Source: Selaginella moellendorffii (taxonomy: Eukaryota; Plantae; Lycopodiophyta). Taken from it: a stretch of DNA of 64,000 nucleotides. The notes beneath the pieces are model-generated. The model was not told the DNA's origin. It was given only the letters and a program-made list of their open reading frames with translations, and ran no database searches. This document shows, in pieces, positions 1 to 55,362 of the stretch; position 1 is the stretch's first letter; every line of letters begins with the position of its first letter. The stretch lies in NCBI RefSeq assembly GCF_000143415.4, contig NW_003314285.1, forward strand, positions 895,370 through 959,369. Reading direction: 5' to 3'. The translations under genes and the position numbers were made by a program.

Positions 1-226
1 ATTGTTCCGCCAACTCGGCCTACGGCATCTTTGCGTCATGCCCAAGACCCCACAGGTAAGTTTTGAGTAGTTCTATGTTTTAACTCACGCTCTATACAAA
101 CAGGACGAGCCGATCTTAGGAATTTTAACGCGCCACGATTTTGTGCCGGAAAACCTGTTGACGCTGTATCCGTACCTCAAGCACAGGGCTACCAAGGTTC
201 CCAGGCTTTCCAGCTTCCTGGCTTGA
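1..226 (+). CDS. CLC: 3' end of a CLC chloride/anion channel (CBS domain, CLC-c-like); last two exons
   Basis: Exons <1-55 and 104-226 (GT-AG intron 56-103) translate to LFRQLGLRHLCVMPKTPQ/DEPILGILTRHDFVPENLLTLYPYL...*, matching the plant CLC C-terminal CBS motif LFRxLGLRHL...GILTRHDF. Confidence 0.9.
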
Positions 227-395
227 TTCATTATTTATTGTGATTTGTTATTATCCTTCATTTCGGTGCGATGTTCTTCATGTGTACAGAGGTTGAAACA
301 TAATGGTATCAGCGAGATTTTTCTTCCAGTTTTTAGAACTTTTTAAACTATAAATATATTAGCTTTAAAACATGTAATAATAATGAAAGATAAGT

Positions 396-1418
396 TTATT
401 GTATATATGGGTGATGGTCACATCCATCTCCATTGATTATGAGACAAAACATGAGTACTATAAATATGAAAAACAAGACAATGGGCTCCTCAATCGCTCC
501 GTAAACAAACAGTATAACAAGTAAAACCACCTCTAAGAAAAGGGCTATGGACGCCCCCTGTTTCATGTCTTCTTCTTGTTCCAAGCTCGTGAGATCGGCT
601 GGCAGGCTGTTACCGGTGGCATCGGCAAAGTCTTTGAGAATCTTCTTGGCGACTCTTTGCTGGGGGTCGAAGTGCTTGAGATAGCTCCTTGGAGAATCCA
701 GCATCAAAGGTGAGATGTTGACAACGTAGACGAAGGCGAGGCAGGCGTTGAAGAGGTATACGTGCCGCCATGTTGGTAACAGCGGGATGGCGATCACGGG
801 AAGGAGCACGGCGAACTGGATGCAAACGATTGTCCATGCCGCATTTGAGAGGCTGTGCTTGCCGTGACACCACCGATCCTCGTCGAAGACGTGGAAGATC
901 CCCATCTGGACGTTGGAGACGTAGCAGAAGAACTTGACGATTTCAAGGGGGAAGGCGTTGGGAGAGATTGTGAGCCAGATCTCACATACGGCTCCAATGA
1001 AGAATGTGCAGCTTATGATCCATTTCTTGCTGTGCACGACGTGGGCAAGCAAGCCTGCGTGGGAGAAAAGGTGGTGGAAATCAAATATTGCGAAGACCAA
1101 GGCTTGGAGAATTGGGGACTTACCCATTAAAAGGATCTCCAAGACGATCGAGAAGCCCAGGAATGGCTGTAGAGGAGCATCCTGATCGCCTCCAGTGATG
1201 CTCACTAGCTTAAACGCTAGCGAGTGGTGGAATGTATGTTTTGATCCCCAGAAAACGTATGCCAAGTGAAAGAAACTGACCACGCAGCTTAGGGAATAGA
1301 AGATACTTTGGCGTTGAAACAGCCACTCATGCTTCGCCCATCCCTGCTCAATCTCTTCCAGTGAATACTGACCATTGCGATTAGCACGACTAATTCCTCG
1401 TAGCAGCCCTTCTTCCAT
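396..1418 (-). CDS. Divergent organic cation transporter (OCT/SLC22, MFS)-like protein, N-terminal half only; copy 1
   Basis: Hydrophobic ORF with OCT-like landmarks in order: W..Q..F.SL...FH, LTISPN, and TWRHVY...DSPRSYL...AKKILKDFADATGNSLP (cf. SWRxLY...ESPRWYL...A..IL..IA..NG..LP). Likely in-frame 69-nt GT-AG intron at 1055-1123. 3' end uncertain. Confidence 0.6.
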   Translation of the reverse strand: MEEGLLRGISRANRNGQYSLEEIEQGWAKHEWLFQRQSIFYSLSCVVSFFHLAYVFWGSKHTFHHSLAFKLVSITGGDQDAPLQPFLGFSIVLEILLMGKSPILQALVFAIFDFHHLFSHAGLLAHVVHSKKWIISCTFFIGAVCEIWLTISPNAFPLEIVKFFCYVSNVQMGIFHVFDEDRWCHGKHSLSNAAWTIVCIQFAVLLPVIAIPLLPTWRHVYLFNACLAFVYVVNISPLMLDSPRSYLKHFDPQQRVAKKILKDFADATGNSLPADLTSLEQEEDMKQGASIALFLEVVLLVILFVYGAIEEPIVLFFIFIVLMFCLIINGDGCDHHPYIQ

Positions 1419-1490
1419 AAAATCGCACAGAACCTAAACTTAAACCTTAAGTATACTAATATATTAATGAATAAATATTACAAATTATTA

Positions 1491-2421
1491 TTATTGTAAT
1501 GGAAAGCACAAAATTTTTGGAACAAATCTACTACCGCGCTCCAACCAACAATACATCAAAGCAAGTTCCTGCGCAAGAGCAACCAGAACCTTTGCTTTGC
1601 TCACACCTTGCTCTTTCAGAACTGGGCGATCTTCAGGCAGGATGTTCTCAGTTGCATCTGCAAAATCTTTGACCACGTCGAGGGCGCTGCTCTGATCAGA
1701 AGAGAAGCCCCTTAAGCACCACAAGTAGTCCACGGGAGAGTCCATCATGTGTGGCACGATGAAAGCCAAGTACGCAAACGTAAAGCATGCGTTCCACTCG
1801 AGCAAACACTTCCAAGTCGATAAGTGACGCGCAGCAAGAATGGGCCAGAAGATCCCAGCTTGCAAACACAAGAAAACCAGTACCGTCGTGGCGGGATCAT
1901 CGCGCTTCCCATGAAACCAGAAATCTTCCTCAAACCAGTGGCAAATTCCCATGAAAACGTTGGAGACGTAGCAAAACGAGATGATAACCTCAAGCACGCA
2001 CAAGACAACCTCGTTCGAGCACACCGTGATCCAAACGCTACCAATCGCACCGATCAAAAGAGTGTACTTAGAAAAACACCTCTTGCTACGAACGACTGTC
2101 CTGATCAATCCTAGAGAAAGAGAAAGGTGGCAGGTGTTGGCAAGAGAGTTCTTGTGGAAACTTACCGCTGACTATGATCTCTCCAAGGAGAACAAAACCC
2201 ACAAAAGCGTACGTAGCGGGGTGACTTGTTTTGTTGATCACCGATACGAGATTGTGGAAGGCATGGCCCCAAAAGATCCATATCAAATGAAACACAGTGA
2301 CAACGTAACTCAGCCCAAAGAAAAATCCTTGGCGCTGGAAAGCCCAGCCATGATTCTCCCAGCTTCGCTCGATATCTCTCAAGGAATGCTTGGGAGGATC
2401 TAGGAAGCCTCTACTCTCCAT
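1491..2421 (-). CDS. Divergent OCT/SLC22-like half-transporter; tandem paralog, copy 2
   Basis: ORFs 2086-2421 and 1491-2108 join in frame through a 55-nt GTAAG...CTAG intron (2111-2165), at the same position as the intron in copy 1. Shares FQRQ..F..LS.VV..FHL, CYVSN, DSP..YL and KDFADAT.N.LP with copy 1. Confidence 0.6.
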
Positions 2422-2564
2422 TGCCCAGATAGATATAAACTCTAACTCCAGTTAATCTAAGTTTTTAAGTGCTCTGTTTTTAGGGTAACATTTTTTTGGT
2501 AGGGTAAAGTTCTAGCATTGCGAGCAAGGTTTTGGGATTTGGCGATCTCGCGAGGAGGGGGAGA

Positions 2565-3544
2565 ATGTCGGACTTCGATGTGAAGATCGACTATGTGTTC
2601 AAGGTAGTACTGATTGGCGACTCCGCGGTGGGCAAATCCCAGCTGCTGTCGAGATTCGCGCGCGACGAGTTCACCCTCGAGTCCAAATCCACAATTGGCG
2701 TCGAGTTCCAGACCCGCACCATTTCGGTCGACGGCAAGACTATCAAGGCGCAGATCTGGGACACGGCCGGCCAGGAGAGGTAAATTCCAATCGATTTCTC
2801 ATCTCAGCTAGAGAGCTTCCTTCCGCCCCCGCCCCACTGTTACTAAATAGTTCCATGGAGTAACTTCCCGCAAATCTCTCTATACTTTTAGATCCTTATC
2901 CAGGAAATCTCTGCGCCCCTCTGGAGTCCGATAGATCCCTTCCACATTCATTCTAAGTTTTGAGAGATCTTCCCAGCCCAAGCTTTCTCCTCGATTTCAA
3001 TAGATCATGGAAGAACCATAGAAGAGTTTTCTCCAGAGATCTTCCAAGCTGACTCTTTAGCTTTACAAACTCACGAGGATCTCTCTCTTTGGCCAGGTAC
3101 CGGGCGGTGACGAGCGCTTACTACCGCGGCGCGGTGGGCGCCATGCTCGTCTACGACATCACGAGAAAGCAAACCTTCGAGCACGTAGCGCGGTGGCTGG
3201 AAGAACTTCGCAACCACGCGGACAACAACGTGGTGATCATGATGGTGGGAAACAAATCCGACCTGAGCAACAGCCGCGCCATGTCCGTGGAGGAGGGCCG
3301 GGAGTTTAGCGAGAAGGAGGGGCTCTACTTCATGGAGACGTCGGCGCTCGACTCCACCAACGTAGAGACGGCCTTCACGACGGTGCTGACCGAGATCTAC
3401 AAGATCGTGAGCAAGAAGAGCCTGGCCGCCGACGATCCAAACGGGGGACTGGCCAATGTGATGCCACCCGTGCCATCGGGCAACAAAATCCTCCTAGATG
3501 ACGAGCTCACGGCAGTGAAGAAGAGGGCGTGCTGTAGTACGTGA
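2565..3544 (+). CDS. RABA4: Rab11-family small GTPase, RabA4-like
   Basis: Exons 2565-2779 and 3097-3544; [56 protein letters not shown]; C-terminal CCST prenylation motif. Confidence 0.95.
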
Positions 3545-3967
3545 GATCACCCAGCTCGCACTCATCACTTGCCACGATTCTTCTATATATACATTAGTAA
3601 GCTTTTAAAATTTTGCAATTTTTTTCGGTTAAACATTTGCACTATTAAAATATATATAAAATATTGATTTAAAGGTAACTGTATAATTATAAGTATTATT
3701 AGCATTTTTTAGGTTTATAATTGGCCATACGATACTTTTTCGAGGATGAGAAAATTATATAATTAGCTATGATAAAAAAAAATTCAAAATGTGAAAGCTT
3801 CATAATTGGTTATAATAATCATTCTTTTTTTCCAAGATGTGAATGTTTTAGAGCACATAAAAGAATAATAATTTTTAAAAATTAAAAATCATAAGTTTTA
3901 ATAAATAATTTAAATATTTAATAATCTAATAAATTTATTATATTTTAGTATTAAGAAAATTAAATAT

Positions 3968-6178
3968 TGTGAGGGCTACGTATACAGCTATGATGCCATA
4001 TATTAATATTAATGTAGTGGGATTTTGGTAGCCATCAGATTAGTTTCAATCCAAACCATTCACTTTTGTATATAAAATAGAGTTTTTAGGCTAATTGATA
4101 TGCACATTTTCTATATTTCTTTTTTTTATTCCAAGCACTCACATTGGTGGAGGTGAGGGGCACCTTTTGATTGTCTTTGAAGAGTGTTTGGATTTAGGAT
4201 TTTGGTTTAGATTGAGTTTTTGTATTGTCTAGATTTAGCTTTTTCTATTTCCTTTCTTTTGTTTTTTCCTTTCATGAGTTTGGTTTTAATCTAGCTTTTT
4301 GGCATTGTTTAGATCTTTCTTTCTTTCTAGCTTTTTGTCATTTCTCTTCTTTTGCTCTTTCCTTTTCATTCATCTTTATAGCAGATCAACAATCTACTCC
4401 TTTAACCCTAGAGTAGCAGTTGGTACAATTGCTTGATGTTATGCACTTGCAATTGAACAACAAAACTCAATTGATGGTAGCATTCATAGCATGTGGTTTA
4501 ACTTCTCTTGCTTTTGGTGTCAAGCCTCGCGTTCAGCTAGAGTTCTTTCGTGATGATGTGTACCATTGGTTCGATCACTTCACTGTGATTGCCACATATC
4601 ATTCTTCGGATGATGCTCGACGTTTGTGTGAGTTTCCCATGTGTCTCCAAGGGACGGCACTACAGTGGTACAATGGTTTGAGTGCAGCCACTTGTGGGGA
4701 TTGGAGTGTTCTCTCAAACATTTTCAAATGCACATTTGGACATGTTGACGATTGTGATGATGCCTTCTAACAATTGCATTGTCTTTGTCAAGGGCCATCT
4801 GAGTCAGTGATGCAATTTGGCATTTGTTTCCGAAGCCTCTTGCTTCGTGCAGAGCCAAATATATCAAAGCGGATCAAGCTAGGAATGATGTGGCTAACAC
4901 TTCATCAAGATTTTATTAGACTTGTGCATGCACTTGCTCTTACCACCTTTGACGATGCTCTTCGCTTGGCACAACATTATAAGACATCACCTCTTCCCCT
5001 TCTTGTTGCACGTCCTTCCACTCCAGTTCCTATGGGTGATGGTCCTATTCTAATGGAGGTTGATATTGCTGCTGCTCGAGTCTAAAGACAAGGACGAGGA
5101 TGTGGTCATGGCCGTGACATTTGTTGTTGGGCATGTGATGAAGTTAGTCACACTTATTGGCATTGTCGGCATTTTCTGGGTTGGCAACCTCCATTTCTTG
5201 GATGGAGACCTTAGCATCAACAACGTCCTATTGGTGATATTGTGGTGGAAGGTCTGGACACCAAGATGCATTCGGGAAATGAGGAGTCGTGCGAGTTATA
5301 GAGGGACTTTACAAGAATAAGTCAGTGACCCCTCCATCTTTCTTTCGGGAGTATCATCAAGGGGTTCACTGAGCACCAGTTAATCTAGTGTTTACTTTTC
5401 AAGTTTATTTTTATAACAAGAGGTCTTTTATTATTCTCTTCGTGTTGGTTGATACAAGTTCAAATTTATCTTCTATTGCTTAACCTGTTGCCATACATTG
5501 TTGTATACACTTGCGTCGTGCGACAGAACCAATTTTCATTCTTTATGGCAATAGCCATACACATGCATATGCACGAGATGAGGTGGACCTAGTTGTGCGT
5601 GTGGGCGATTTTGAACTTAGGTTGCAATCATTGTAAGTGGTGCTAAGTCAAGCTTTTGACCTCATCCTTGGTATAGAATGGTTACAGTGCAACCATGTTA
5701 GGTATAACTTTGAGGCTTCTCCCCCTTGTTTTATACTTTCTTATATTTCATCCATTCCTTTCATTTCCGTACTTCTTTAACCTTCTTCCATTACTTTTGT
5801 CCCCCCATTATTTCCTTCTATGTTTCTATCTTGTTTTGCTCTTCCCTTTTCCGATCCCTTCAACAATCTTTGTGCTGCAACAGTTGCCCGGCTCATGAAA
5901 AAGTATTCTAATCTCTTTGAATTTGACTTATCGTCTGGGGCCAAGATTGCCACACGTCATCCAATTCCAACCGAGGATGCTCATCTAATCAAAGTTTTTG
6001 TTCGTCGTTGATTACCTAAAAAGATCAAGATTTTACATGCAAACATCAAAGAGATGTTAAAGAAGGGTGTTATTCGGAAGTTGTGAAGTCCTTGGGCATG
6101 TGAATGTGTCCTTGTCACAAGATGTGTGGGCATTTTATGACAAAGTCCGATGGGAGTATTTGTTTCTGCATTGACTAA
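3968..6178 (+). mobile_element. Decayed Ty3/gypsy LTR retrotransposon, 5' part (LTR, PBS, gag, protease, start of RT); same family as 45151-50160
   Basis: LTR-like TGTGAGGG...GCACTCACA at 3968-4143, same PBS TTGGTGGAGGTGAGGGGCACC, gag fragments (DDVYHWFDHFTVIATYH, QGPSESVMQFG) with stops. Similarity ends in early RT (FCID). Confidence 0.92.
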
Positions 6179-7349
6179 AGTTAGAAAAATGCAAAAAGTA
6201 AAGAGAAAGGATTAGAAGGTAAATTGAAGGATTGACATCCTATAAAATCTTCACTTCGTTTCCAAAATTATCTCTATAATAATCAAGTTCATCATCATAA
6301 TTCAAAATCCACTTGTTATCATAATCTAGAATCCACTTGAGCTCATATATATTGTCTTCCCATAAACTTGATTTTTAAACATTCTCGAAGAACTAGACTA
6401 CATCATCTATCACTCACCAACTAATATTATAATCATGCTCCATATCAATAAGAGTTAGTAGAATAGAAGATGCTATTTAATTATATCCCACAGAAATTAG
6501 AGATGGCAACACATCAAAGATAGAGACAATACTAATACAATTACACTGACAACACCAAAAGTTCAATATAATGGAGTAATATCAACACTCTTAAGTGATA
6601 TACTTTTTTATCAATAGTGGCATGGCATGGCAAAAGAAAAGAATGCAATAATTATTGAAGCACAAATATAAGCACAGTGATAGCTAGAATTCTAGATCTT
6701 GCAAAAAGTTAACATAGATCTAAATTTAAAAGAGAAAGAAAAGAATACAAAACAAAGCATTGATAAAAGCTTTCCCCTCTAGGGATAAATTGTAATTTAG
6801 CAATATATGGGAATAGGTATATTAATTAGGATTTAAACCCCTCTTTATATATAAGCATGAATGGATTAAATTAAGTCCCAAATACTACTATAATTAACAT
6901 TTTACTTAGGTATATATATATATATATTTGTGTATGTGTATTTATAGACCTTACAAATGCTTTTTATTTAAAAATTTAAACAAAAACTTAATTATGTTTT
7001 ATCAATGAGAATGTTGGAAAGGTAATATATTCATCTTTAATTGCCTTACAAAATTGAGAAACTGGAAACTAAATGGGCACTCATGGATTAGTTAACAATT
7101 TTAACACATGCAAAATACAGTAAAATTAACAAGTGTTTGAGTAAAGAACCAAATACTTAACCAAGCATTTGACACTTTTTGTTATATGAACATAAATTTA
7201 ACACCATTATTTTTATTCTTTTTAAATTCTTCTTCTTACATAATCTATAAAAAAAAAACTGACATAATTGTTTTTTTACAATTAGGAAATTTAAAATATT
7301 TACAAAATATTATCTTTCTATAATAGCATTCATTTGTTATGAGTTAGCT

Positions 7350-7950
7350 TTTGTTTAGAGATGTACAGAAAACTTTCATTGGATCACCATGACATTAGAG
7401 CTGGAAAATAAAGTACAAGACTTTGAGCATTCACTTCTAGAAGTGTATAATTGCTTTAAGAGGATAAGGCACCCTTGTCACAAGGCATGAACCAAATTTT
7501 TTATATAATAATATATAAAGTTGCTTGAATGAGTTAATATTTAATAGTTTGTGAATATAGTGTTATAGTGTTGCCTCAAAGGTTCTTGACATTTATGCAA
7601 ATAGGCAAAGCATCCTCAATATTGTTAACCCCACCTGGATGCACAGCAGTTATGGTTTGTCAGATTTCAATTTTCTTAGTTTTCTTAATGATAACTTACA
7701 AAATTTCCTTATTTTATTCTTTTTTTTTATCTTGAAGATCCACTCGTTAGAAATTTGGATATTTTAATGGTCTTGCCCACTATCTTCTTTTGCAATTGAA
7801 ACTCACAATAGTGCTAAATCACTATTTGGACTAACACTATTTGGAAGTGATTTTTATTGCCTATTATACCTTTTGATTTCATAGTTAATCAAGATTCGGT
7901 TTTGGTCCTTACCCTCAGGTAAACTAATCATTCTCCAGGTTACTGAACTT
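7350..7950 (+). pseudogene. Possible relic of an intron-containing KDZ (Kyakuja-Dileera-Zisupton)-type transposase
   Basis: Exon-like blocks in AT-rich DNA give, in order, EHSLLEVYNCFK, LDI, AHYLLLQLK, FGLT and RFWS, resembling the KDZ order H..L...N..GE / YDI.C / AH...CQ / FGL.DGE..ER.WS. Many stops and frameshifts. Confidence 0.25.
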
Positions 7951-8097
7951 GAGGAATACATGCTTAATAATGTATTTGACAAATTCTAGATAAGCTATTA
8001 CCAATTTGGAGGTACTGAAGTTAGAGAAGTATATTTTTATAATATTCTTTTTTGCAGTTAATAATTTACTTTTTCCCCTTATGTTTGCCTTTTTGTA

Positions 8098-9879
8098 TCA
8101 TCGGGCTTGGATGGGAGAGGTTGGCAAGTTAACAGAGAATCCTCTGGGCAAGGTGGTGGTCTCTAGCTCCACAAGAGATTCCAGCTGCTTTACCACCAGT
8201 CCCATGGACGGTCTCAACCAAGGTTCCTCTTGTGTACACGACACAGCAATCTCCAGAATTTTCTGGCATTCCACCTCCACAAAACTGGGATCTCTCCTCA
8301 GCCTTGGATCGATCAGGCTGTTGTGGCAATCGGCTTGGATCTCAACATCCTCCACTCCAGCCAAGTAATTCGATCCAGAACTGGTTTCTTCCTCACCGCC
8401 CTCGATTGCCTGATCTAGCTCTTCGATTCTCCTCCGGCAGCAAACCAGCTCGATCAAAACCACACCGTAGCTGTAGACGTCTGTCTTGTCTGTGATCGTG
8501 GAATGGAGCCACTCGGGCGCCATGTAGCCCTGAGTTCCTCGCATCACCGTGATCGTTTGGCTCTTGTCCTTGTCGACAATCTTGGCGAATCCAAAATCGG
8601 AAATCTTGGCACGCATCTTCCCATCCAGAAGAATGTTCTGAGGCTTGATATCCAGATGGAAGATCTTCTCGCGGCATGAATCGTGGAGATAGGCCAGCCC
8701 GCGGGCGACATCCATGGCGATCGAGACCCTGCTGCTCCAATCCAAGTACCTCTCCTTGCCAAAAATCCACGAATCCAGCGACCCGTTTGGCATGAATTCG
8801 TACACCAGGAAGTGGAGCGGGCTCTTGATGCAAAACCCCAGCAGCCTCACGAGATTCAAGTGGTGAATCCTCCCCACGGCCATCACCTCCGCCCGGAATT
8901 GCTTGCCAGAGCCCCCGATCCGCTTGACAGCCACCAATCTCCCATCCGGAAGAACACCCTTGAAGACAGACCCCGATCCGCCCTGTCCCAGCTTCGATCC
9001 AGCGCCGAAATCCCCGGTCGCGGCACAGAGCTTCCGATGCCTGAATCGCTCCGGCAGCATTCCCCCGAGCTCGCTCTCCTTCTCGCAATCCCTAGCCCGG
9101 GACCGCGCTGCCCGCCACGCAAAAACGCCAAGAACAAGCCCTAGAACAATCCCAGCCGTCGCTGCCGCCACGGAGGACGCGATCGCAACCGTCCGTTCCA
9201 AACGCGGCCTCTTTCCCGCGCGCTCAAACTCCCATGTTATATCGATGATCCCTTCCGAGATTTTGTGTCCCAGGGCCTCCCAAACGCCCTGCGTGGCGCC
9301 CAGGCTCTTTGGAGAGCACGGTGGATAGAAGCTAGTGGCGGCGGTACAGCCATCCATGCCCGAGCACTCGTCCACAACCATGGCCGTCACGGTACGGCCG
9401 TTGAGGGCCGTGATCGTTACGTTTCTACCGCAAGCGCCTCTTGGCCGTTGATAGTTATACCATCCGGTGGCCATGGATGCCACGAGATCGGACGGCTGGT
9501 ATTTCTTCTCCTCGCACCTCGAGCCATTATCGAGCTCGATGTAGTAGAGAATGGCGGGGTTGGGGCGGCGGCGCGACACTGGCGGCGAGCAATCGTAGAG
9601 ATAGTATGTGGTGTTTGTGGCGCAGTGATCCTCGTCGATGGTAGGAGCGGTGTAGACGAATGATTGGGCGGGATTGCAGCCCGGGGCGACTGGGCAAACG
9701 GAGATGTGGGTGTTGGAGGGATCGCTGTTGCATTGGCCGTAGGGATCGCAGATCATCATGGCCGGGCAGTCGTTGACGCTCGCGCAGGGCTTGCCGCAGG
9801 CGCTGCTCGTGGATTGGGGATTCCCGGCCGCGAAGAACAGCGTGACCGTGGCGAGAAGAACTGGGATAGAATTGGGCAT
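8098..9879 (-). CDS. Receptor-like kinase with kiwellin (kissper + barwin-like DPBB) ectodomain and non-RD SD-2-like kinase; copy 1, intronless
   Basis: First ATG 9879 (MPNSIPVLLATVTLFFAAG signal peptide); CGKPCASVNDC...IC...C kissper; YDCSPP, VASMATGWY, CGRNVTITALNGRTVTAMVVDEC, PPC, VWEALG, GIIDITW; TM helix; VAVK, HLDIKPQNILLD, DFG, MRGTQGYMAPEW. Confidence 0.92.
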   Translation of the reverse strand: MPNSIPVLLATVTLFFAAGNPQSTSSACGKPCASVNDCPAMMICDPYGQCNSDPSNTHISVCPVAPGCNPAQSFVYTAPTIDEDHCATNTTYYLYDCSPPVSRRRPNPAILYYIELDNGSRCEEKKYQPSDLVASMATGWYNYQRPRGACGRNVTITALNGRTVTAMVVDECSGMDGCTAATSFYPPCSPKSLGATQGVWEALGHKISEGIIDITWEFERAGKRPRLERTVAIASSVAAATAGIVLGLVLGVFAWRAARSRARDCEKESELGGMLPERFRHRKLCAATGDFGAGSKLGQGGSGSVFKGVLPDGRLVAVKRIGGSGKQFRAEVMAVGRIHHLNLVRLLGFCIKSPLHFLVYEFMPNGSLDSWIFGKERYLDWSSRVSIAMDVARGLAYLHDSCREKIFHLDIKPQNILLDGKMRAKISDFGFAKIVDKDKSQTITVMRGTQGYMAPEWLHSTITDKTDVYSYGVVLIELVCCRRRIEELDQAIEGGEEETSSGSNYLAGVEDVEIQADCHNSLIDPRLRRDPSFVEVECQKILEIAVSCTQEEPWLRPSMGLVVKQLESLVELETTTLPRGFSVNLPTSPIQAR

Positions 9880-10117
9880 TGTAGAGTTGGAGAGATTTGG
9901 GGAAAAAGCGATCGATCCTGACAATCTGGGGGATTGGTTCTTAAAGATCGCGGTGGTTTAGTTAGACTTTGCGAGCATCTTCTCGCCGCGAAAGTCTAGA
10001 GTTGACTTTGACATTGGGATCGATCGATCGCCAGAGATTTAGTTCGTTTTGGAGTATGCTCTGGGTAGAAACGTTCCAATCGATCACAAACTCTCCCTCT
10101 CTTGCGAGTTTTTAAAA
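9880..10117. promoter_or_regulatory. 238-bp shared bidirectional promoter region of the two kiwellin-RLKs
   Basis: Gap between divergent ATGs at 9879 (-) and 10118 (+); contains TTGACTTTGACA (W-box core plus near-copy) at about 10002-10013. Confidence 0.6.
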
Positions 10118-12008
10118 ATGCTACTAGTAATGTTGTTTGCCTTAGTAGTTCCTCATACATTAGGGCAAACGATCCAGGGCAAGGATGAGGAGAAATGCGC
10201 CTTGGCGCCTCGCTGCACGAATCCAGGTCGGTGCTCCAATGGCTCGGCCTGCTACCCCGACACGATGCGCTCCGGCAACCGATCGCTTCGCGCTGGATCT
10301 TGCCTCGACGATTCATCCGCCGGCTTGTAACATCTGCGCCCCCAGCTCCACTCTGATCTACAATGGCACGCAGATGTGCCCCGAGTGCTGCGTTCCCGGC
10401 CTGGCCTATCGCTTCTATGCGTGCTCGCCGCCACTCCAGATCGTCAACCGGGCCGTGCTCTACTCCACGACTTTTGGCGAGAATCTGTCCTGCACGGATC
10501 AAGTCTTTTCCATCCAGGATCAGGTGGTATCGCTGGCTTCCGGGTGGATCCAGCGCAACTTCAGCATTTGTCTCACCAATATCAACATCACTGCTCCAAA
10601 CAATCGCAGCGTCGTGGCCAAGATCGTGGACGAGTGCTCGTCCAAAGCTGGATGCACTGCCGCCACTGCTTACTGGGAGCCGTGTGCTCCCAACGCCATC
10701 GCTGGAACTCCCGGGGTGTGGAGCGCTCTTGGATACGATCCGGGGGATGGAATTCTCAGGGACGTAAGCTGGAGCAAAACGAATGCGTCAGTGAGTGCCT
10801 CTGAAGGAGGAGGAGGAAGATCCAAGAAGAAAAACACTGGGGTTATCGCTGCAAGTGCTGTGGTGGGATTCGTGCTCTTGGCAATGGTTCCAGTGGGATT
10901 TTATTGGATCAAGATCAAGGCGAGGTTGGCTCTCAGGAAAAGGAACCAAGAACAGGTTGAGGAGATCAGTACGCTAGGTGGTCTTCCCAAGCAATTCAGC
11001 TACCATGACTTACACAAGGCCACAAGGAACTTTGCGAAGAAGTCGATGCTTGGAGAGGGAGGATTTGGCATGGTTTTCAAAGGCAACCTTTCAGATGGAA
11101 CGACAGTGGCTGTGAAGAGAATGGACGTGGAGATTGAGGGATCGAACGAAGGGCAGCAGCAGTTCAAAGCGGAAGTTTTGTCAATTGGAAGCATCCGTCA
11201 CTACAACCTCGTCCAGTTGAGAGGCTTTTGCATACACGGGCCTTCTTCTCTGCTGGTTTACGAGTACATGAGCAACGGTGCTCTGGACAAATGGATCTTT
11301 CGAAAGGACTCGCGGTTTCTAGATTGGAGCCAGAGGCACCAAGTTGCGGTGGACGTTGCTAGAGGCTTAACATATCTTCACGAAGGCTGTAGAGAACAGG
11401 TGCTTCACTTGGATATCAAGCCGCAGAACATTTTGCTGGACGAGAACCTGAGAGCGAGGATCGCAGACTTTGGCCTCTCGAAGCTCGCGGAGAGGGGGAA
11501 GAGCTACGCAGTGACGGCCATGAGAGGCACTCCGGGATACATGGCTCCGGAGTGGCTCCATACAAAGGTGACGGACAGGACCGACGTTTACAGCTTTGGG
11601 ATCGTGCTGCTGGAGCTGCTAAGCTCGCGGAAGAGCTTGGAGATTCAGAAGCACTCCTCGAGCGTGGCTTCCACCTCGGCGGCTTCTTCATCGTCGGCGT
11701 CATCGCAGGGGGTCTTCATTCTCGGTCACACCGCGGCGAGGCTCTTCCACAGTGGAGATGTGTCGACGCTGGTGGACAGGGGCCTGGAAGTGGACCTGAG
11801 CGTCGCGGAGAGATTTACGAAGATCGCGCTATGGTGCATTCAAGAGGATTCCGCGAAGAGACCGTCCATCGGAAACGCTCTTGCCATGCTCGAAGGTGAC
11901 TTGGAGGTGGGAGACTTGCCTCCTCCTCCTCCAAGCGGCGCAAGCTCGCCGGTTCTGAGATCTCCGGGCATGGATTCGTGGAGTAGCTCGCTACAATCTG
12001 GCACCTGA
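10118..12008 (+). CDS. Kiwellin-ectodomain non-RD receptor-like kinase; copy 2, with an apparent 1-nt frameshift at about 10325
   Basis: ATG 10118 gives a signal peptide (MLLVMLFALVVPHTLG) and Cys-rich segment ending SCLDDSSAG. The rest is in another frame: CNIC...YACSPP, VVSLASGW, VVAKIVDEC, VWSALG, TM, GEGGFG, VAVK, HLDIKPQN, DFG, MRGTPGYMAPEW. Removing one T joins them. Confidence 0.85.
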
Positions 12009-12194
12009 TCATCGTTTCTTTTATCAGGTAATAGATTAAACTTTCTCTATAGTTTTCTATTATTTGTTTTCAATTTTCTTTTCTTTTTCTTTTTCTCTTT
12101 GTAGCAGGCGATTTGCTTTCGCCTGTGCCGCAAATGGTTAGACAATTATGTACATAACATCTCTCTCGCCTAAATTTTTTTGCTTCGATCTCGT

Positions 12195-15100
12195 CTAGAA
12201 GTTTTCTTTGTGAAACTCAAACCTGCAGCTTGATTGCTGTGTGTATTCCTGTGAAAGTGTGCGTAGCTCTTTTGCTAGCAGCGCCGGGCCGCAGTAAAAA
12301 ACACCTGCGAATATCAAAAAGCTATATGGAAAGTGAAAACCAATTTGACTGACCAATTGTGGAGTTAGCATGCGTCGTCGAAAGGTTTGAGAAAACTTTG
12401 CTCCAGTTTGGACGAGCAAAATGTGTGCGTACCTGGAAGTTTATATACGATTGATATTATTACTCAGAAAAACCATAAGAAAATACCCAAAATTCATACC
12501 CGAGTTCCAGAAACAATGTCAACTCCGTTTTTTGCATGGTGCAATGCTTGAACCATTGCAATGAGAGCAGACCTCGCGTCACCCTCCTCATAAACACTCG
12601 TGAGATAGTTGTGCATCTCAATCACGGCCTGATAAACAAAAGATTGATAATCCAAACTTTGGAGGAACATAGAGAGGTTTTACCTTGTGATCGATTTCCG
12701 CAACTTCATTCATGACACCTTTAAACCACTCGAACGATCCCTGCTCCCGCGTCACCCAGTAGAAATACGCGTTTGTGGGACACTTCCGCTTGCGTCTACG
12801 TGGGCTTTCGAGCGAGTGTCTCCTGGGGCTCTCCAGCGCTAGTGCTCCGTTGGGAGATCCAAATGACTTGCTCATATCAATCGAGAATGATAAATCCTGC
12901 AAGCACAATCGATCGAGCCTAGCTTTTGTTACTCACGAGAGATCGTTTGAAGAGGCTTGAGCGCACTTACTTGCAGCTGATCGGCCATCTTGCGCTGGTT
13001 GAGCATGTCTTTGAGAATGCTGATAAAGGGAGTGGCACCGATTCCCAGTCCAATGAGGAGAAGAACATCGTACTTTCTATAGTCTTGCGAAGGACCTCCA
13101 TACGGGCCGTCTATCACCAGCTTTGGGAATTTGCCTAGCGAGGTTGGGATCTCTTCCGTGGTTAGTTCCTCCCTTAACAATCCGCTCTTGCTGTCTGTGG
13201 ATGGCTCGCAAACCTTTGTAACAAGAATAAAATGATCAAATAAGAAAGTTGGCAAACCATATCATTGGAAACAAATTGTACCTCAGAGAAGAGCTTCCTC
13301 ATCTTTTGCGTCCAGTCGCCCAAAGTTCTGATGTGAACGCTCAGGAAATCCTCTCCTGGAGCGGAGGTTATGGAGAAGGGATGCCTGTGGAAAACATTAT
13401 AAGCTTCAAAGGCAAGAACCATAATTTGCACCATACCATTCGAAGGGCGAGATTTCAGCGCACTTGAGGAAGAGATACATTCCACTGTGGTAAGTGAATC
13501 CAGGAGGCTTGCTCATGTGTAAAGCTAGCACATTTCCGGGGTATATCGCAGCCTTTTCGACTATCATAAGAAAAAGCCAAAATCTTTCCAAAAACCTTGC
13601 TTACCTTGATGATTTGTACAGTGTAATTGGCCCTGCAAGCTCGATACGCTCGCTCTCCAGCATACAGCAGTAGGGGCACAGCCAAATACATCCATGTCTG
13701 CAATTCAAAATTCTGCTATGAAAAAGATAAAAAGGAGTTTTAGCTTACATTTTTTTCGTGCCACTTGTAAGTAAGGAAGAGGAAGAAGGAATGGACGAGG
13801 AGGAGGATGTAAACGACGATGAGGAGGTGATGCGAGTACCAAAACGCATTGAAACCGGTAATGTTTTTGAGAGGCCAGGGAAGTTTGATGAGATCTCTCC
13901 GGAACCATCTCGACGCGAGAGTGAAGGCGATGACCATCAATACTACCATGATAATTCCCGTCACCCCTTCCACCGATCGAAGAATGTCCACATAAGTTGG
14001 CTTCTTGTTGTGGAATCCTTTCCCGATCATCCTTACAAACTCCTGGTCAGGATAGTTGACAATCCTAACGAAATCGCAAGCCAGGTGAGTTCCTGCGTGG
14101 ATGAGAACCCCCACAACAATCCCTAGAGCAATGATCTGCAAAGTATACAAAAACGTTGACGGCCAAGTTGGTATACAACTTTCTCGAAGGTGATCTTACC
14201 TTGTGGAAGTTGATATCATCGTCAAAAGGAACAAGATTCCCGAGCCAAGTCGATCGAAGCCAGGTGATCGTCTTCCTGCAAACCGGGAAGAGGATCAAAG
14301 CCATGTTGAGCTTGAGCGTCTCGGCAGCACCCTTGGCGGTACAAACGCAGTAGCCCATGACTTGGAACGCCGCCTTGTTCTTGTACTGCACAAACTTCCA
14401 GCTGAAGAGCCCGGCCATGGCCATAATCCACAGCGACACCACCCACATTCGCCTCCAGTTATCACCCAAAGAATGCCGCGAGTTCCTCAGGAATCTCTGC
14501 AATCGGCGTGAGATGCCTGGTGCTTTCGTGCTCGTGATGATCTGGTTCGCCTGCTGGCTGCTGTGATCCTTGGGGTGTGGTCCTCGCATCAGCAGCGTCT
14601 CTAGTTGCCATAGCTGCAAACCATGGAATGCAAACCAAAAGCACCAAAAAGGTGGTGTCAGAAAAAACGTTGAGATACTTGTGACGGATTGGAACACTTT
14701 AGATTCCCATCCGAAGCTTCTTCTTTGCTTTCTTTTCTGTTCCCACGTCTAAATCTTCATTTCCTACCTCGATGTAGCCCAGGTTTTCCGGATCCAGTTC
14801 TTCCATGATGAGCGCGGCATATTCCTCGGCCTGCTCCTTGAGTTTCGACAGCCGGTTGGCGGACGCACTCAGCATTATCACCTGCCACCATTGCAAGTGT
14901 TCAGCAATTCTCTTCTGGATATGCAAAAAGAAAAAGAGGAGAAAGAAACAAAATCTGGAAACTTTTTGAAGTTTCAAAAGGTTTGTAAAAATGCATACCT
15001 CTTTCACCTCCCTCTCTGAAATCCGTCCATCGAGGTTCTTGTCACACCTATGAGGCGGCGGATCAGCTGCTAATTACATGATTACGAGCGGGACTGACTT

Positions 15101-15362
15101 ACATGTCGAAGAAGATCTGCATCCTCGCATCGAAGCTCTGATCAGAGATTTGCAACCAGAAATCGTACATGTCCCTCTTCGACAGCTTCCTGAGCTGCTT
15201 GAGCCCTCGCCTCCGCGCCAGAGCATCGAAGAGCTCCGCGGCAAATTCGTTGGAATCCTCCATTCCTGTCGATCAGAGGCCAAGCAGATCAGTGGTGTTC
15301 CTTCGAGCGATCAAAACCAAACGGTAGGAAAGTGTTGCTTGGATCTTTTCTCATGGCTAAAG

Positions 15363-15394
<32 letters not shown>

Positions 15395-15974
15395 TCTTGG
15401 AAAGGGAAACATTACCAATGCACAGCCCAAAATCCGATTTGTCGATGAAGCCCTCTTCGCTGGCGAGCTTGTCGAATCGCCGCGACACCAATTCCCACGC
15501 CAGCTTCTGGTTGTTGCTCTTGCTGATGAATCGCAGCCCCTGCAATGCGTGCTCGGCCCCCGATTTGGATCTCGCCAGCCTGCGGATGTCCGCGCCACGG
15601 CTGCTCGGCGCCACCACCTCCTGATCCTTGGCCTTCTTCCCCGACCGCGACGACAATTGCCGGACATGGCTCCACACATCCCCTGTGAATTTGCTGAGCT
15701 TGGCGGACGCGCTCTTGATCAGCGCTGCCGTCTCCTGTGGCGATGCCCTCTTGGAATTGGAATTAGATCGTGTGTCGAGCAGCAGAGTATTGCCGTGAGG
15801 ATCAGCCGCTTGGGCGCTCTGCGCTGGAATCGGTGCGATGCTCCGGAGGGTCACTGAATCCTTCCTCACATCCAGCGTCAGCTCCACGAGTTGGTGATAC
15901 TCGCCCTCTTTCGGCTGATTGAAATCGTTGATCTGGAGCTGGATTGGGGGCAGAGACACCTGGTGGTAGTCCAT
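12195..15974 (-). CDS. RBOH: Respiratory burst oxidase homolog (NADPH oxidase), multi-exon
   Basis: [19 protein letters not shown]-hand exon ([14 protein letters not shown]), [73 protein letters not shown]. Confidence 0.97.
15363..15389. repeat. (GA)n microsatellite in first RBOH intron
   Basis: About 13 GA units read directly. Confidence 0.9.
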
Positions 15975-18368
15975 CTTTTTTGCCTTTCTTTTCTCTCCCC
16001 CACGAGGAGAGATTGATCGAATTCGTCTCTCGAGGGATAGAGAGACCACCGCGCTCTTTCCTTATTTAATTCGTGGGCGTGGACTCGGCCTCCTCGAAAA
16101 AAAAATGGTGGCAAAAGATTCTTCCTATATTTCTTTGGGAAATCAAACTCGAGATGATCATCGATCACAAACTCCAGCAAAAATTCCTAGCTCTAGACAC
16201 GAAAACCTTTGCTCTCCTTGCCACAGTTGTTCCAAAGACTACACTCGAGAGCTACAGCCACGATAGCATTCTCGAAAACCAAAGTGGCCCTACTTTACTA
16301 GAATGTTAAAAAAGATGGATTTTTCTCGCTTCACCCGCTCGCTTTAAACTTGAAAGAGTTTTTCTTGTCCATGTCTCTCATTCTTTCTTCCCTCTTCTTC
16401 TTCTTCTTCTTTTTCTTCTTCTTCGTTGTTTGTTTATCTTTTCCTCAAATTGTTTGTAGATTGTGAGTTTACACCACTGTCAAAAAAGAATTCACCTCTT
16501 TCAGGTTCCTTGTGGATTTTTGGTAACTCGGGCAAAAACATGACGTGGGGGTAAGAATTTCCAAAAGGCATGACGTGGGGTAAATTCCAGTCTTGGCTGC
16601 ACACCAGCAGTTACACAAGTTCACACTGCCAAAAGCTCTCACGGTAAATTCGAAAGCAGTGATTTTATCTGGTCCCAATAAAAGATCAGAGAGAGAGAGC
16701 AACTCCTTCGCTTGGATTTCCATGATTTCATCCCGTCAACATTTCTGTAGTTTGCATTACGCGGTTTGACAACGTAGTCCTCCCCACAGATGAATTTCAT
16801 CTCATCTTCTCGAAGAACAAAGACAAAACTAGGCATCGTCGCCATCTTCGTATTATATGTTTCCCTTGTTGCCAAGTCCGGCATCTTGTGTACTTGTGTG
16901 TAGCTTTTCGCGCAAGGCATTTCAATTGCAAGAAGCTCTCCAGGAGATCTCTACGAATTCTTAATGTCTTTTCTGTCTGGAAACATGATACACCCATACA
17001 CCACATACATTTGTTTAGCGCCTGCAGAACTTTATTCTACCAAATGCCGTGTCACGTCTTCCGCTGCTATGTGATCTTGCAAATCTGACCATTTGCTCGT
17101 TTCGCTGTTCTAGAAAGCCTGGCCTATGTCTAGCTTAGCCGGCAACAAAATTTCAATCCGAAAAGCCTAAAATACCGAATGACTGTTTTGACCAATTTAT
17201 ATCAAATTGTTCCGTTTGTGCTTGAGAGTCAACTGCTGATCAAGGGACGACGAGAAAGAAAGAAGCAAAGAAATGAAATAAAATAAAAAAGAGAAGAGAA
17301 GCTTCTGAAAGTTTGAAGGCCTAGACATTACGCAAGTTTGTTTGTGTGTCATGTTCCTCGAAGATTGACATTGAGATCGAATTAGGGAGCCACAGCTCTA
17401 TGGCAGTTGTGAAGTTCCAGATTGATTGAGATATCCAAGGCATGGCTATCTGTTCTTCCTCGTCTATCTCCCTCTCTCCTCTTTTCGCTCTTTGTGCATG
17501 GAGACATTCAAAGGTGGATGATTGCGATGCATCAGAAGTTTTCTATGAAACATGCCCCACTAGAGACAGCGAAACAAGAACAGAAGGTAATACAAACGTA
17601 CAAGTACTTCAGACTGTAGAACATTCAGAAGGACAATCAAAATCGGGAAAAGAAAGAGGGTTTTCATGGCTAAGTTCAGAAAACTTGATAGAGAGAAACG
17701 CCTCATTGTGTCGTTCTTTGGGTGGTACAGGTGATCCAACCTTTGTCTCTTTGCAGTGGATGACTTGCCCTTCAAAGGGATATTTGCCTATGAGAGCAGC
17801 AAAGGTAAGCACACTCCAAAAGACAGTTAGTGTGTTTTTGTGGGTCAATGCTGTGATTTCAGCAACAAGCATGGCCAAAGGTGTCAAAGACCATCGGGTC
17901 ATCTAAGTTGGTGTCACTGGTGAGGACCATACCTTCCAGTCAAGCATAGTCAAACCCCACATTTCAAGCTACAAGCTTTCGTTTTGTTTTGTCTACCACA
18001 AAAATATTCACACAAAGTATGTATAGTTTACAAGGTAGATTGCACTTTGCCTCCTTTCTTCCAGTGATTGAACCATTTGGACACGGAAATGGGGCCTCCA
18101 GCTCTGAACAAGGAAAAACAAAAACCCAAATGTAATTCAGCAATTATCAACAAGGTTTGGGATTTGGGGATCTTTCTTTGTTAATATACAGACAGAAAAT
18201 GGAGAAAAGAAGAGAGAAAACAAAAAAACGAGACAAGATGATCTAGTCTGTGGCTATAAAACACAAAAAGCAGTAGCAGTTATAATCAGGCGAGCAAATT
18301 GCAAACGACGCACAGACACCATTCAGCCTGAAAAGTTAGACGCTAAAGAAGAGAGATTTGGCCACACA

Positions 18369-20358
18369 TTACCTCACGATTCCATTCTCGTGAGCAGGAC
18401 TTTTAGCCTTCCTCGAGCCTCCTCCTCCAAACGGGGTCGACACCGTTTTCCCCACAAACTTCCCGGCCTTTGTCAGTCCACCTCCCACAGCATCCATCGT
18501 GCTCCCAATCATTCCAGCCTCTTTTGCCTTCTGCTTCTCTTCCAGGAACTTCTTCTCCATCTCCATCGCCGCTTTCTGTTCCTCCGGCGTGTAGACGTGG
18601 TATTTCAGCTGCTCGGACAGAGGAAAGCGCTAGCTTAGCTAAACCAGGTACCGAAAAAAGCTAGCTCAGTTTCTAATAGCTTACCCGGACAGTGATGGTG
18701 CCTCGGTCTTTCTTGTCGCGTACGTTCATCTTGTCCAGTGATGGAAGTAGATCAAAGACTTCCTCCTTCGTTTCCTCTGGCAAAAGTTTGGCTACGCGAT
18801 AGGAAACTATTCCCAGCAGAGCATCCTTTTGACCAACGTCTTCGTCATAAACCTACACACAACAAGAAATGTGTAGCTCGAGCCTGAAGAAAGTAACAGG
18901 TACCTGTAAGGTGAGGAGCTGGGTCTCATGGTCTTCGATATCGAAGTTGAACTCTGCATTCCACTCGGGATTCAGGTTATTATTGACAACCTTGGTTTTG
19001 AACTTGAAGAGGGGCCGCACGTACGCAACCACATACGGATCAGACCTTCCAAACATTTCCATGTTTTTCAAGGAATTGGCCTTTATCACTCCAACTGTAA
19101 GCCGGCCTTGAAGTTTCAGCTCGAGGTCGCTGAAGCGAAAGAAAACGTAAGACTGCCGTTAAAAGCAACGTGAAACGTGTACCTTGTGTCAACAGGAAGT
19201 CCTCCAATGGGTATCACCCTCCTGTGAGGCCACTCTAACTGATCCGTAATAGCATCCTCGACCAAATCCTGTAAAAAGCAATGCCCCGAAAGTTTGAATG
19301 GCAGCTTTCCTCGAAGCACGGAACCTTTATCATGTCTGCGAGGCCAGGAACTCCTGTCAAGCTTCCACCAATCACCTTCAGAGTGTACTTAACTTCTGGT
19401 TTCGGCTGCATGGTAAAAAGCAAATGAGTGTGACACAGTGATGGCGAAAAAAGAGACTCAAGGATACATTACCTTGGCTAGCAGCGCCACAACGACGGCT
19501 GAAATACAAGGTATATTTTCCGAAAGCTGGAAAATCACTCTAATAGTCGCAAAAAATTTGAGGTTTTTTAACTGGTCGAAGGAGGAGAAAATTTAGTGCG
19601 AGGTGAAACTTCTCTATCTCGTTCCATACCTGTACAGGTAAGCTGGCTCCGACGAGTGTCTGAATCCCCAGAATGATACTTGCATCGCCATTCCAACGAA
19701 AGTCCATGTCCATCGTGATTTGACCCGGTTTTAGCGTCTGGATCCTTATGCCTGCATCCAGTTTTCTAAAAACCAAACAATACAAAGTCACGAGTCACCT
19801 TCGATTTGCGGTGCCAGGCGTCCGAGGGAGAGCTTGTCAAATTTCAAAGAAGAAATGCCAATCGGCCGGTATTGCTCCAGAACCGGCTCCACGGACTCCC
19901 GGATGATCTCTTGTGCGGCCTGGAAAACAAACATATAGTTTAAGACTCAGATAGAGACGAAGGAAGGACCAACTTACTCCTGCAACGTAAGGCCAGACTT
20001 TCTCGAGTTGCTTGTTCATCCATTTCACCTGCGACGAGAAAAGTTTAGAAGCGAGGCCTTAAGACAAGAAACTATCGCTACTAGAAATCCACTTACGCGC
20101 TCAAACTCTGGAAAGATCACCCACGGGGGGAAGGCATCGTATAGAAGTTTCTTCACTTCGTCTTGGGACATTTTCCCTAGTAGCTTGATATTCGCAGCCT
20201 GGAAGAAAAGAAGATAGCGCATAAATTTGCTACTCCAGCCAAACGAAACAAACCTTGGCGATACGTTGCTTGCTCCGGCAGCGCATTGCAAAGCACCATC
20301 CTGCTACCAATCCTATCCCGACTATTACCCCGAAAAGCAACCCCGTGAGCAATCCCAT
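18369..20358 (-). CDS. CLB1: Calcium-dependent lipid-binding protein, synaptotagmin-like (TM-SMP-C2-coiled coil)
   Basis: MGLLTGLLFGVIVGIGLVAGW, FPPWVIFPEFER, KWMNKQLEKVWPYVA, GQITMDMDFRWNGD, C2 domain GRSDPYVVAYVRPLFKFKTKVVNNNLNPEWN; matches the CLB1/SYT7 architecture. Confidence 0.92.
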
Positions 20359-44760: not shown

Positions 44761-45150
44761 TAGTGAGCTGATATGAAAGAATAATGAGGAGTCACCATCA
44801 TAAACAACCTTCGTTAAAGTTTGGAGAGAAAAGATCAATCCTAGTAAGGCACAAACAAGAGTGTAAATATAATCATAAAAAAAAAATGTTTTAATTTTTT
44901 TTATTTATGAATGTTCAAAAAAAGTTACCATATTTATCATTTTCTTATAAATAATATATACTTGAGGTATCAAGCAAAAAAAGTAATTATCTGCACTTCA
45001 TGGATCAAAAAGTATAGCTATAAAATTCAAAAAAACTGATTATATACTTAAAGTGTTCATTTAGTGATGGAGATTAACTCTCAATTATATAAAACTCTAA
45101 ATGTATAGCCTTAATGTTCATTTATATATTTAAAGTATTAAATATTTTCA

Positions 45151-48821: not shown

Positions 48822-48845
48822 TACTCGCGCGACTCCTCGTTTCCC
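48782..48845 (-). promoter_or_regulatory. Predicted -1 programmed ribosomal frameshift signal (G GGA AAC plus H-type pseudoknot)
   Basis: Heptamer 48845-48839 in the gag frame, 6-nt spacer, stem 1 UCGCGCGAG/CUUGCGCGA, stem 2 AUGGAGGG/CCCUCCAU; the -1 frame is the pol frame. Confidence 0.8.

Positions 48846-52475: not shown

Positions 52476-55362
<2,887 letters not shown>

Follow-up and report, generated by a model that had tools for sequence, protein, structure and literature searches.

PR5K of Arabidopsis is a receptor-like kinase (RLK) with a thaumatin/PR-5 ectodomain. Kiwellins, such as kiwifruit Act d 5 (structures 4PMK and 4X9U) and maize KWL1 and KWL1b (6FPG and 6TI2), are secreted proteins of approximately 190 amino acids (aa) without a transmembrane (TM) segment or kinase, and maize KWL1 binds and blocks Cmu1 of Ustilago. 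Here we analyse a stretch of 64,000 nucleotides from the lycophyte Selaginella moellendorffii (RefSeq assembly GCF_000143415.4, contig NW_003314285.1, positions 895,370 to 959,369 of the forward strand; hereafter the window, position 1 being its first letter), which contains a pair of divergent genes at positions 8098-12008. Both share the fold and the Cys framework of the soluble kiwellins, in gene 1 together with the kissper module, but they differ from them because a TM segment and a kinase follow the kiwellin domain, so that neither can be classed as a soluble kiwellin of approximately 190 aa without a membrane anchor. They belong to a small family of type-I RLKs in Selaginella, which have a kiwellin ectodomain, a TM helix and a non-RD kinase and occur as two types; we consider it probable that the ectodomain binds an extracellular ligand and signals, and that the two types are co-regulated.

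Kiwellin ectodomain and non-RD kinase

A previous inspection of the bare letters (the sequence-only reading) had proposed two divergent intronless genes, each encoding a signal peptide, a kissper-like module, a kiwellin domain, a TM segment and a kinase. Gene 1 starts with the ATG at 9879 on the minus strand and gene 2 with the ATG at 10118 on the plus strand, which leaves 238 bp between them; no GT-AG joints were detected and the paralogues are single open reading frames (ORFs), whereas the ORF of gene 2 is frameshifted in this window. When the window was searched by tblastn with gene 1 as query, only these two kiwellin-RLK copies were obtained. Pfam assigned KWL1 (PF24300) to gene 1 with 74.0 bits and to gene 2 with 83.8 bits at a cut-off of 27, and Pkinase with E 3e-43 and E 1e-47, respectively. 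Each gene has one TM segment between these two domains, at residues 230-258 in gene 1 and at residues 216-244 of the main ORF in gene 2. The corresponding S. moellendorffii proteins are P0001 (97% identical to gene 1) and P0007 (96% identical to gene 2), both encoded on one 1.03-Mb scaffold. The proposed order of domains applies to gene 1 and to the intact allele of gene 2, but the N-terminal module of type 2 is only partly kissper-like.

The mature ectodomain of gene 1 aligns to residues 2-187 of kiwifruit kiwellin 4PMK, kissper part included (E 5e-27), and to maize KWL1 and KWL1b with E 1e-20 to 1e-22. The Cys residues of its kissper-like module are found at positions 28, 32, 38, 44, 50 and 62. 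An AlphaFold2 model of this ectodomain, calculated from a 43-sequence alignment (mean predicted local distance difference test score, pLDDT, 83.6), was compared by Foldseek with 6FPG, 6TI2 and 4PMK and gave template-modelling scores (TMt) of 0.83-0.92 for these structures together. Maize KWL1 in its complex with Cmu1 (6FPG) was matched with TMt 0.89 at a root-mean-square deviation of 1.8 Å, and kiwifruit kiwellin with TMt 0.90-0.92 (4PMK_B, TMt 0.92 at 1.6 Å). The kiwellins are followed at ranks 10-22 by a loosenin and by bacterial and fungal expansins, which reach TMq values of approximately 0.4 at 15-24% identity. The expectation that the ectodomain folds as a kiwellin was thus borne out for gene 1 both by sequence and by superposition of the model. 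The type-2 ectodomain, taken from the intact allele, matches maize KWL1b (6TI2) with E 8e-25, its fold being assigned by sequence only. Because its alignment to kiwifruit kiwellin begins only at residue 21, and with a different Cys spacing, we regard its N-terminal Cys-rich module as kissper-like in part. The ectodomains of both genes are assigned to the kiwellins, that of gene 1 with a predicted kissper module.

Both kinases contain the Gly-rich loop (GxGxxG), VAVK, the catalytic loop HLDIKPQN, in which the Arg of HRD is replaced, DFG and APE, which agrees with the HLD loop and the intact VAVK and DFG noted before. Judged by motif content, they are to be regarded as catalytically complete. 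Their nearest relatives outside Selaginella are angiosperm proteins named SD2-5, At5g20050-like and PR5-like receptor kinase, the SD2-5-named ones reaching 44-47% identity. Among the 120 best kinase matches, HLD is the commonest catalytic-loop motif (78 occurrences). The tree of kinase domains unites the Selaginella kiwellin-RLKs in one clade (support 99/98), composed of type 1 (91/80) and type 2 (100/99), with gene 1 on a long branch (0.9). Adjoining it is a seed-plant HLD clade (100/99), which holds forms with G-lectin, thaumatin (PR5K), GH18, malectin and leucine-rich repeat (LRR) ectodomains. A G-type lectin ectodomain (B-lectin, S-locus, PAN) gave no Pfam match in either Selaginella gene, which have KWL1 instead. 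The comparison with SD-2 kinases that had been recommended points to SD2-5/PR5K-type proteins as the closest named relatives, although the join is weak; the kinase appears closest to a clade that took on many different ectodomains. Since HLD is common to this whole clade, it would have been inherited and is not special to the genes described here, and for the same reason it gives no independent weight to an immune role. The non-RD loop is present as had been read, but the hint at an immune receptor derived from it does not count as separate evidence.

The two-gene unit and the origin of the fusion

Five other S. moellendorffii loci were fetched via kiwellin-RLK proteins (L001, L003, L004, L005 and L006), and in all five, one of them (L003) being allelic to the window, type 1 and type 2 are arranged head to head. 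The spacer measures 215-291 bp at L003, L001, L005 and L006 (Table 1). Spacers of paralogous loci, which were entered in opposite orientation to the window, have diverged too far from the window spacer to be aligned. W-box-like cores (TTGACTTTGAC) occur in the window spacer at 10002-10012; in the other haplotype, the first of these cores is changed. In the kinase tree as well as in the kiwellin tree, the pair of the window and L003 is the earliest branch of each type, and the type-1 and type-2 topologies are compatible, which fits a copying of the two-gene unit. Read in this way, the trees show a history that would comprise one fusion in the Selaginella lineage, the subsequent duplication to types 1 and 2 and finally the copying of the unit.

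When the window locus is compared with the others, synonymous divergence (dS) approaches or exceeds saturation: it amounts to 1.2-1.6 for type 1, and for type 2 it lies above the range in which it can be estimated. The ratio of nonsynonymous to synonymous divergence (dN/dS) amounts to 0.24-0.38 overall, to 0.34-0.51 in the ectodomain and to 0.16-0.26 in the kinase; both domains are under purifying selection, which is looser in the ectodomain. Furthermore, the family shows a birth-and-death pattern. Extra, truncated or broken copies are present at L001 (1585-3351, an extra type-1 copy without a type-2 partner inside the locus), L004 (11993-13258), L005 (11425-17759) and L006 (6536-7785), and two more degenerate copies, P0125 and P0142, come from other scaffolds. 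S. moellendorffii also has a soluble kiwellin, P0385. The head-to-head pair, for which co-regulation had been suggested before, is conserved in its arrangement at every locus fetched and evolves under purifying selection. The analogy that had been drawn to pairs of nucleotide-binding leucine-rich repeat (NLR) proteins concerns the gene layout only.

Locus L003 was fetched from GL377634.1, the scaffold that carries P0001 and P0007. It is collinear with window positions 8054-19915 at 97.3% identity, and we therefore regard it as the other haplotype. Its two ORFs are both intact (589 aa for type 1 and 630 aa for type 2) and lie 240 bp apart. The sole frame-breaking coding difference between the window and L003 is a GC dinucleotide missing after 10322 in gene 2; the remaining indels either keep the frame (12, 3 and 3 bp) or fall outside the coding regions. 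Contigs of four public sequencing runs were mapped onto positions 7800-12300; all runs are contig sets, and their RNA status was guessed from size. The GC is present in contigs of three of the four runs (X1, X2 and X6), one of them DNA-sized, and a contig of the fourth run (X9) is identical to the window over 10175-10625. Hence, both gene 2 alleles are real. An assembly error at 10322 is ruled out by the independent, exactly matching X9 contig. An intron was likewise rejected as explanation of the break, since no GT-AG joint occurs in any run and the other allele has two extra bases; neither of the two joints that were reported (11278>11582 and 11446>11529) shows a splice consensus, their sides are no longer than 29-30 letters, and 11278>11582 is also seen in the DNA run. 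Allelic dN/dS between the window and L003 is 0.32 for gene 2, which resembles the 0.27 of gene 1, and because the allele of the other haplotype is intact as well, the deletion looks recent. From the window allele, gene 2 is predicted to yield only a secreted Cys-rich peptide of 70 aa or a product from a downstream start without signal peptide. The former, encoded at 10118-10330 on the plus strand, still comprises a signal peptide and five Cys, and truncated kiwellin genes may be one route to stand-alone kissper-like peptides.

An unbroken series of RNA-like contigs covers gene 2 over 10175-12028, i.e. over the ectodomain, the TM segment and the kinase, and the RNA-like run X9 covers gene 2, not gene 1. 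Over the barrel of gene 1, two of the X2 contigs listed break off at 9096 and 9552, respectively, with 23 letters left unaligned in either of them, and a DNA run covers the hole. Splicing across 9097-9551 is not favoured, given that canonical sites are missing, that the stretch has a length not divisible by 3 and that the end at 9097 is shared by a DNA contig; the hole in the RNA-like coverage probably stems from the assembly graph or from paralogues. RefSeq models of paralogues (P0002 with 612 aa, P0010 with 635 aa and P0269 with 598 aa) join the ectodomain and the kinase.

To follow the distribution of the fusion, the ectodomain was searched exhaustively and without a profile against 1.84 billion representative proteins, which resulted in 233 kiwellin-like clusters; a word-indexed search with the ectodomain region returned only P0001 and is uninformative on other taxa. 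Pfam was scanned for 10 of the longest proteins among the 150 of 233 clusters listed, and among these 10 a kinase was found in the Selaginella proteins and in one metagenome protein, P0151. A P0151-like layout is also present in Cuscuta campestris (P0273, 586 aa, 66% identity) and in the transcript-sized Logan contigs P0271, P0272 and P0274. The kiwellin and TM part of P0151 is 84% identical to P0122, a mis-joined gene model of the saguaro cactus Carnegiea gigantea; P0151 and P0271 are cactus-like, and P0122 is a fragment. The P0122 model (KAJ8448161) seems to join a kiwellin-RLK (signal peptide, kiwellin, TM, kinase start and end) to a neighbouring soluble kiwellin, and if so, the cactus kiwellin-RLK adjoins a soluble kiwellin gene. 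In these eudicot proteins, a signal peptide is followed by a kiwellin domain that lacks kissper, then by a TM helix and an HLD kinase. In the kinase tree, they are deeply embedded in a eudicot subclade, beside LRR-bearing kinases (99/96 and 100/99). In the kiwellin tree, they group with one another (100/99) within the seed-plant kiwellins and not with the Selaginella sequences, which have a clade of their own (100/99). Because both trees separate the Selaginella and eudicot forms, two independent kiwellin-kinase fusions appear to be the most economical reading. It is mainly the kinase tree on which this argument rests, because the kiwellin tree has a weakly resolved backbone; neither domain tree favours a single origin of both fusions. 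Among the best matches of the Selaginella ectodomain is also a 280-aa kiwellin-like protein (P0123, 39% identity) of the zygnematophyte alga Closterium sp. NIES-65, according to which kiwellins would predate land plants.

Table 1. Features of the S. moellendorffii window and spacers of the head-to-head loci used for comparison
Feature	Positions	Strand	Remarks
Gene 1 (type 1 kiwellin-RLK)	8098..9879	-	Uninterrupted 593-aa ORF plus stop; Pfam KWL1 and Pkinase
Gene 1 signal peptide, approximately residues 1-23, MPNSIPVLLATVTLFFAAG...	9811..9879	-	Putative, read from the sequence; mature start equals kiwifruit kiwellin residue 2
Gene 1 kissper-like 6-Cys module, approximately residues 24-63	9691..9810	-	Alignment with the kissper segment of 4PMK/4X9U, from chain residue 2
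Gene 1 kiwellin double-psi beta-barrel	9214..9690	-	PDB sequence match 4PMK E 5e-27; AlphaFold2 model; Foldseek
Gene 1 TM helix	9115..9192	-	Sole strong hydrophobic segment, residues 230-258, Kyte-Doolittle 2.2
Gene 1 kinase domain	8191..9000	-	Pkinase E 3e-43; HLD 8650-8658; VAVK, DFG and APE present
Divergent intergenic spacer, presumed bidirectional promoter	9880..10117	.	238 bp, read from the sequence
Gene 2 5' piece (ATG, putative signal peptide, Cys-rich module)	10118..10330	+	Frame 2; premature TAA 10328-10330; L003 allele reads through
GC dinucleotide deletion site	10322..10323	+	Pairwise alignment with L003; contigs of X1, X2 and X6 insert GC behind 10322
Gene 2 remainder	10323..12008	+	Frame 0; Pfam KWL1 84 bits and Pkinase E 1e-47; 96% identical to P0007
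Gene 2 kiwellin barrel	about 10368-10778	+	Pfam KWL1
Gene 2 TM	about 10839-10907	+	Hydrophobic segment
Gene 2 kinase	about 11034-11885	+	Pkinase; HLD 11406-11414
Light-harvesting complex (LHC) protein	41446-42111		Ordinary plant gene
Pentatricopeptide repeat (PPR) protein	42652-44838		Ordinary plant gene
Ty3/gypsy retrotransposon gag-pol ORFs	45357-49753		
RNA recognition motif (RRM) protein	53636-54511		Ordinary plant gene
Locus L003			Spacer 240 bp; allelic scaffold; both ORFs intact
Locus L001			Spacer 291 bp; single ORFs of 646 and 612 aa; third type-1 copy nearby
Locus L005			Spacer 222 bp; head-to-head type 1/type 2
Locus L006			Spacer 215 bp; type 1 disrupted, split over two ORFs
Locus L004			Spacer wider; extra truncated type 2

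Proposed function and its alternatives

If the family works as receptors, the kiwellin ectodomain would bind an extracellular ligand, for which the analogy to maize KWL1 and Cmu1 makes a secreted protein of microbial origin the likeliest candidate; a glycan is the main alternative. Binding would then be passed to the kinase, probably helped by an RD-type partner kinase, as is the case for other non-RD receptors. Type 1 and type 2 would be co-regulated by the shared spacer and may assemble into a hetero-oligomer. A much more specific version can be formulated, in which both types form an obligate heteromeric surface receptor, co-expressed from the spacer, with the kiwellin domain as bait for chorismate-mutase-like or other effectors, i.e. 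an extracellular counterpart of an NLR decoy pair that would have evolved independently in lycophytes and superasterid eudicots. The decoy part of it is an analogy to maize KWL1 and Cmu1 (6FPG), and we regard this version as improbable.

Several points weigh against the proposed receptor function and should be kept in mind. To our knowledge, binding of an effector by a kiwellin is documented only for maize KWL1/KWL1b. The class of ligand must be left wide, because relatives of the double-psi beta-barrel, namely expansins and loosenins, bind glycans. In the window haplotype, gene 2 is a predicted null allele, which weakens the claim of a pair at this very locus. For gene 1, the depth of RNA-like runs is zero at approximately 9159-9460 and low elsewhere, and as all runs are contig sets whose RNA nature is only guessed, no single molecule is seen to span ectodomain and kinase. 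The join of the Selaginella clade with the seed-plant HLD clade reaches only 90/56, inside a clade (99/95) that excludes the HRD-type CRKs and an HFD kinase, and the tree was calculated without Selaginella G-lectin SD-2 kinases or Arabidopsis references. Positive selection was not detected gene-wide, pairwise NG86 dN/dS values being below 0.52 everywhere and the sequences too few for site models. Moreover, the conserved head-to-head layout may persist by inertia without any cooperation of the proteins.

The last point leads to the alternative that survives best, although we still hold it to be rather unlikely: the two types could be independent receptors, and their head-to-head arrangement no more than a relic of an ancient tandem duplication in inverted orientation, which was carried along as the locus was copied, with neither co-regulation nor a heteromer. 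Segmental duplication by itself would copy the arrangement, and one member can be lost, as illustrated by type 1 broken at L006, type 2 frameshifted in the window and the unpartnered type-1 copy at L001; the spacers, too, are not alignable between paralogous loci. However, both types were kept under purifying selection at several loci over distances at which dS is near or beyond saturation, and the spacer has remained as short as 215-291 bp at most loci, which speaks against this alternative.

A role as cell-wall or glycan sensor, in which the kiwellin barrel binds wall polysaccharides or their fragments and reports the state of the wall or its damage, appears considerably less likely. There are RLK classes that sense the cell wall, namely WAK and CrRLK1L. 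Loosenin and expansin structures, some of them solved with cello-oligosaccharides, come next after the kiwellins in the structural comparison, but these matches are weak (TMq approximately 0.4, 15-24% identity) when compared to the TMt of approximately 0.9 for kiwellins. The one documented kiwellin activity is protein binding (6FPG, 6TI2). As far as we know, glycan binding is not an established function of kiwellins.

Even less probability is given to a membrane-tethered inhibitor, in which the kiwellin domain would mainly act at the cell surface to neutralise an enzyme that a microbe secretes, and the kinase would be secondary or regulatory. Maize KWL1 reportedly blocks Cmu1 activity. It was solved in complex with this protein (6FPG), and S. 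moellendorffii retains a soluble kiwellin (P0385); nevertheless, a secondary role is hard to reconcile with a kinase that is the most constrained part of the protein (dN/dS 0.16-0.26) and has kept every catalytic motif. Finally, a decaying locus in which neither window gene is functional is very unlikely, because, despite the frameshift in gene 2, the broken or truncated copies at L004, L005, L006, P0125 and P0142, the long kinase branch of gene 1 (0.9) and its low and patchy RNA-like coverage, the ORF of gene 1 is intact in both haplotypes (allelic dN/dS 0.27) and gene 2 is intact in the other one (allelic dN/dS 0.32).

Neighbourhood and comparison with known systems

Behind gene 2 and tail to tail with it, a respiratory burst oxidase homologue with NADPH_Ox, Ferric_reduct, FAD and NAD binding domains is located at approximately 12186-15970 on the minus strand, the protein having 940 aa in the allelic L003. 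The pair at L001 is flanked by genes for a basic secretory protein and a class III peroxidase, i.e. genes related to reactive oxygen species and defence adjoin the pairs both in the window and at L001, possibly by coincidence. Collinearity between the window and L003 ends 44 bp past the stop codon of gene 1, and positions 1-8053, which include an AT-rich block at 6-8 kb (GC 0.29), have no match in the 10 kb downstream in L003. This part looks like a haplotype-specific insertion or rearrangement. Further window features are given in Table 1.

A full-text search of open-access papers found no description of a kiwellin-kinase fusion. The survey of the kiwellin family (PMC9813671) does not contain the word kinase, in the accessible part of its supplementary list of kiwellin "fusion proteins" neither "kinase" nor "fusion" appears, and a large receptor survey (PMC10834447) does not mention kiwellin, barwin or DPBB (double-psi beta-barrel). 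Within the open-access literature, this agrees with the remark of the sequence-only reading that kiwellin is not among the standard RLK ectodomain classes. The fusion may have been overlooked because old models of the Joint Genome Institute (JGI; EFJ05557, EFJ13203 and EFJ22890) split the ectodomain off as partial proteins. Given such split models, some of the "Selaginella kiwellins" in family surveys may be receptor ectodomains. As judged from the searched literature, the kiwellin fold on a TM kinase represents an undescribed ectodomain class of plant receptor kinases, and it offers a concrete test case for the question of whether effector-binding proteins can act as extracellular baits.

With regard to gene arrangement, the NLR pairs RGA4/RGA5 and RRS1/RPS4 resemble the Selaginella unit, since in both cases two diverged paralogues with a short shared spacer were kept through duplications. 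However, the NLR proteins are intracellular and have a demonstrated integrated decoy and physical complex, whereas the Selaginella pair is known from gene arrangement alone. The eudicot kiwellin-RLKs (P0273, P0151, P0271 and P0122, all uncharacterised entries) show the same order of signal peptide, kiwellin, TM and HLD kinase, but lack the kissper module, and their kinase and kiwellin domains fall among eudicot and seed-plant groups. The G-type lectin RLKs SD2-5 (SD-2b) share the HLDIKPQN loop and the single-pass layout and represent the closest kinases outside Selaginella; they carry B-lectin, S-locus and PAN domains where the Selaginella genes have kiwellin.

The idea that an effector-binding protein has been turned into a surface receptor, as put forward before, is in accordance with the fusion of kiwellin, TM and kinase, but a defence protein as ectodomain is not new. 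Chitinase-like RLKs, represented by Magnolia P0312 (GH18 and kinase), likewise carry a PR-protein-like (pathogenesis-related) ectodomain on a kinase of this clade, with GH18 as the differing fold; in the kinase tree, the PR5K kinases form the sister group of P0312 (100/99). P0312 presumably corresponds to the tobacco CHRK1 type. PR5K and its poplar and willow relatives (P0070, P0107 and P0108) are similar in presenting a secreted defence fold as ectodomain of a single-pass RLK with an HLD kinase from the same broad clade, but their ectodomain is thaumatin (PF00314) and they occur in seed plants. We know of no conserved head-to-head two-type unit of PR5K genes. With kiwellin, the Selaginella genes add a further case, next to thaumatin and chitinase-like proteins, of a PR-type defence protein that this one clade of kinases would have recruited as a sensor.

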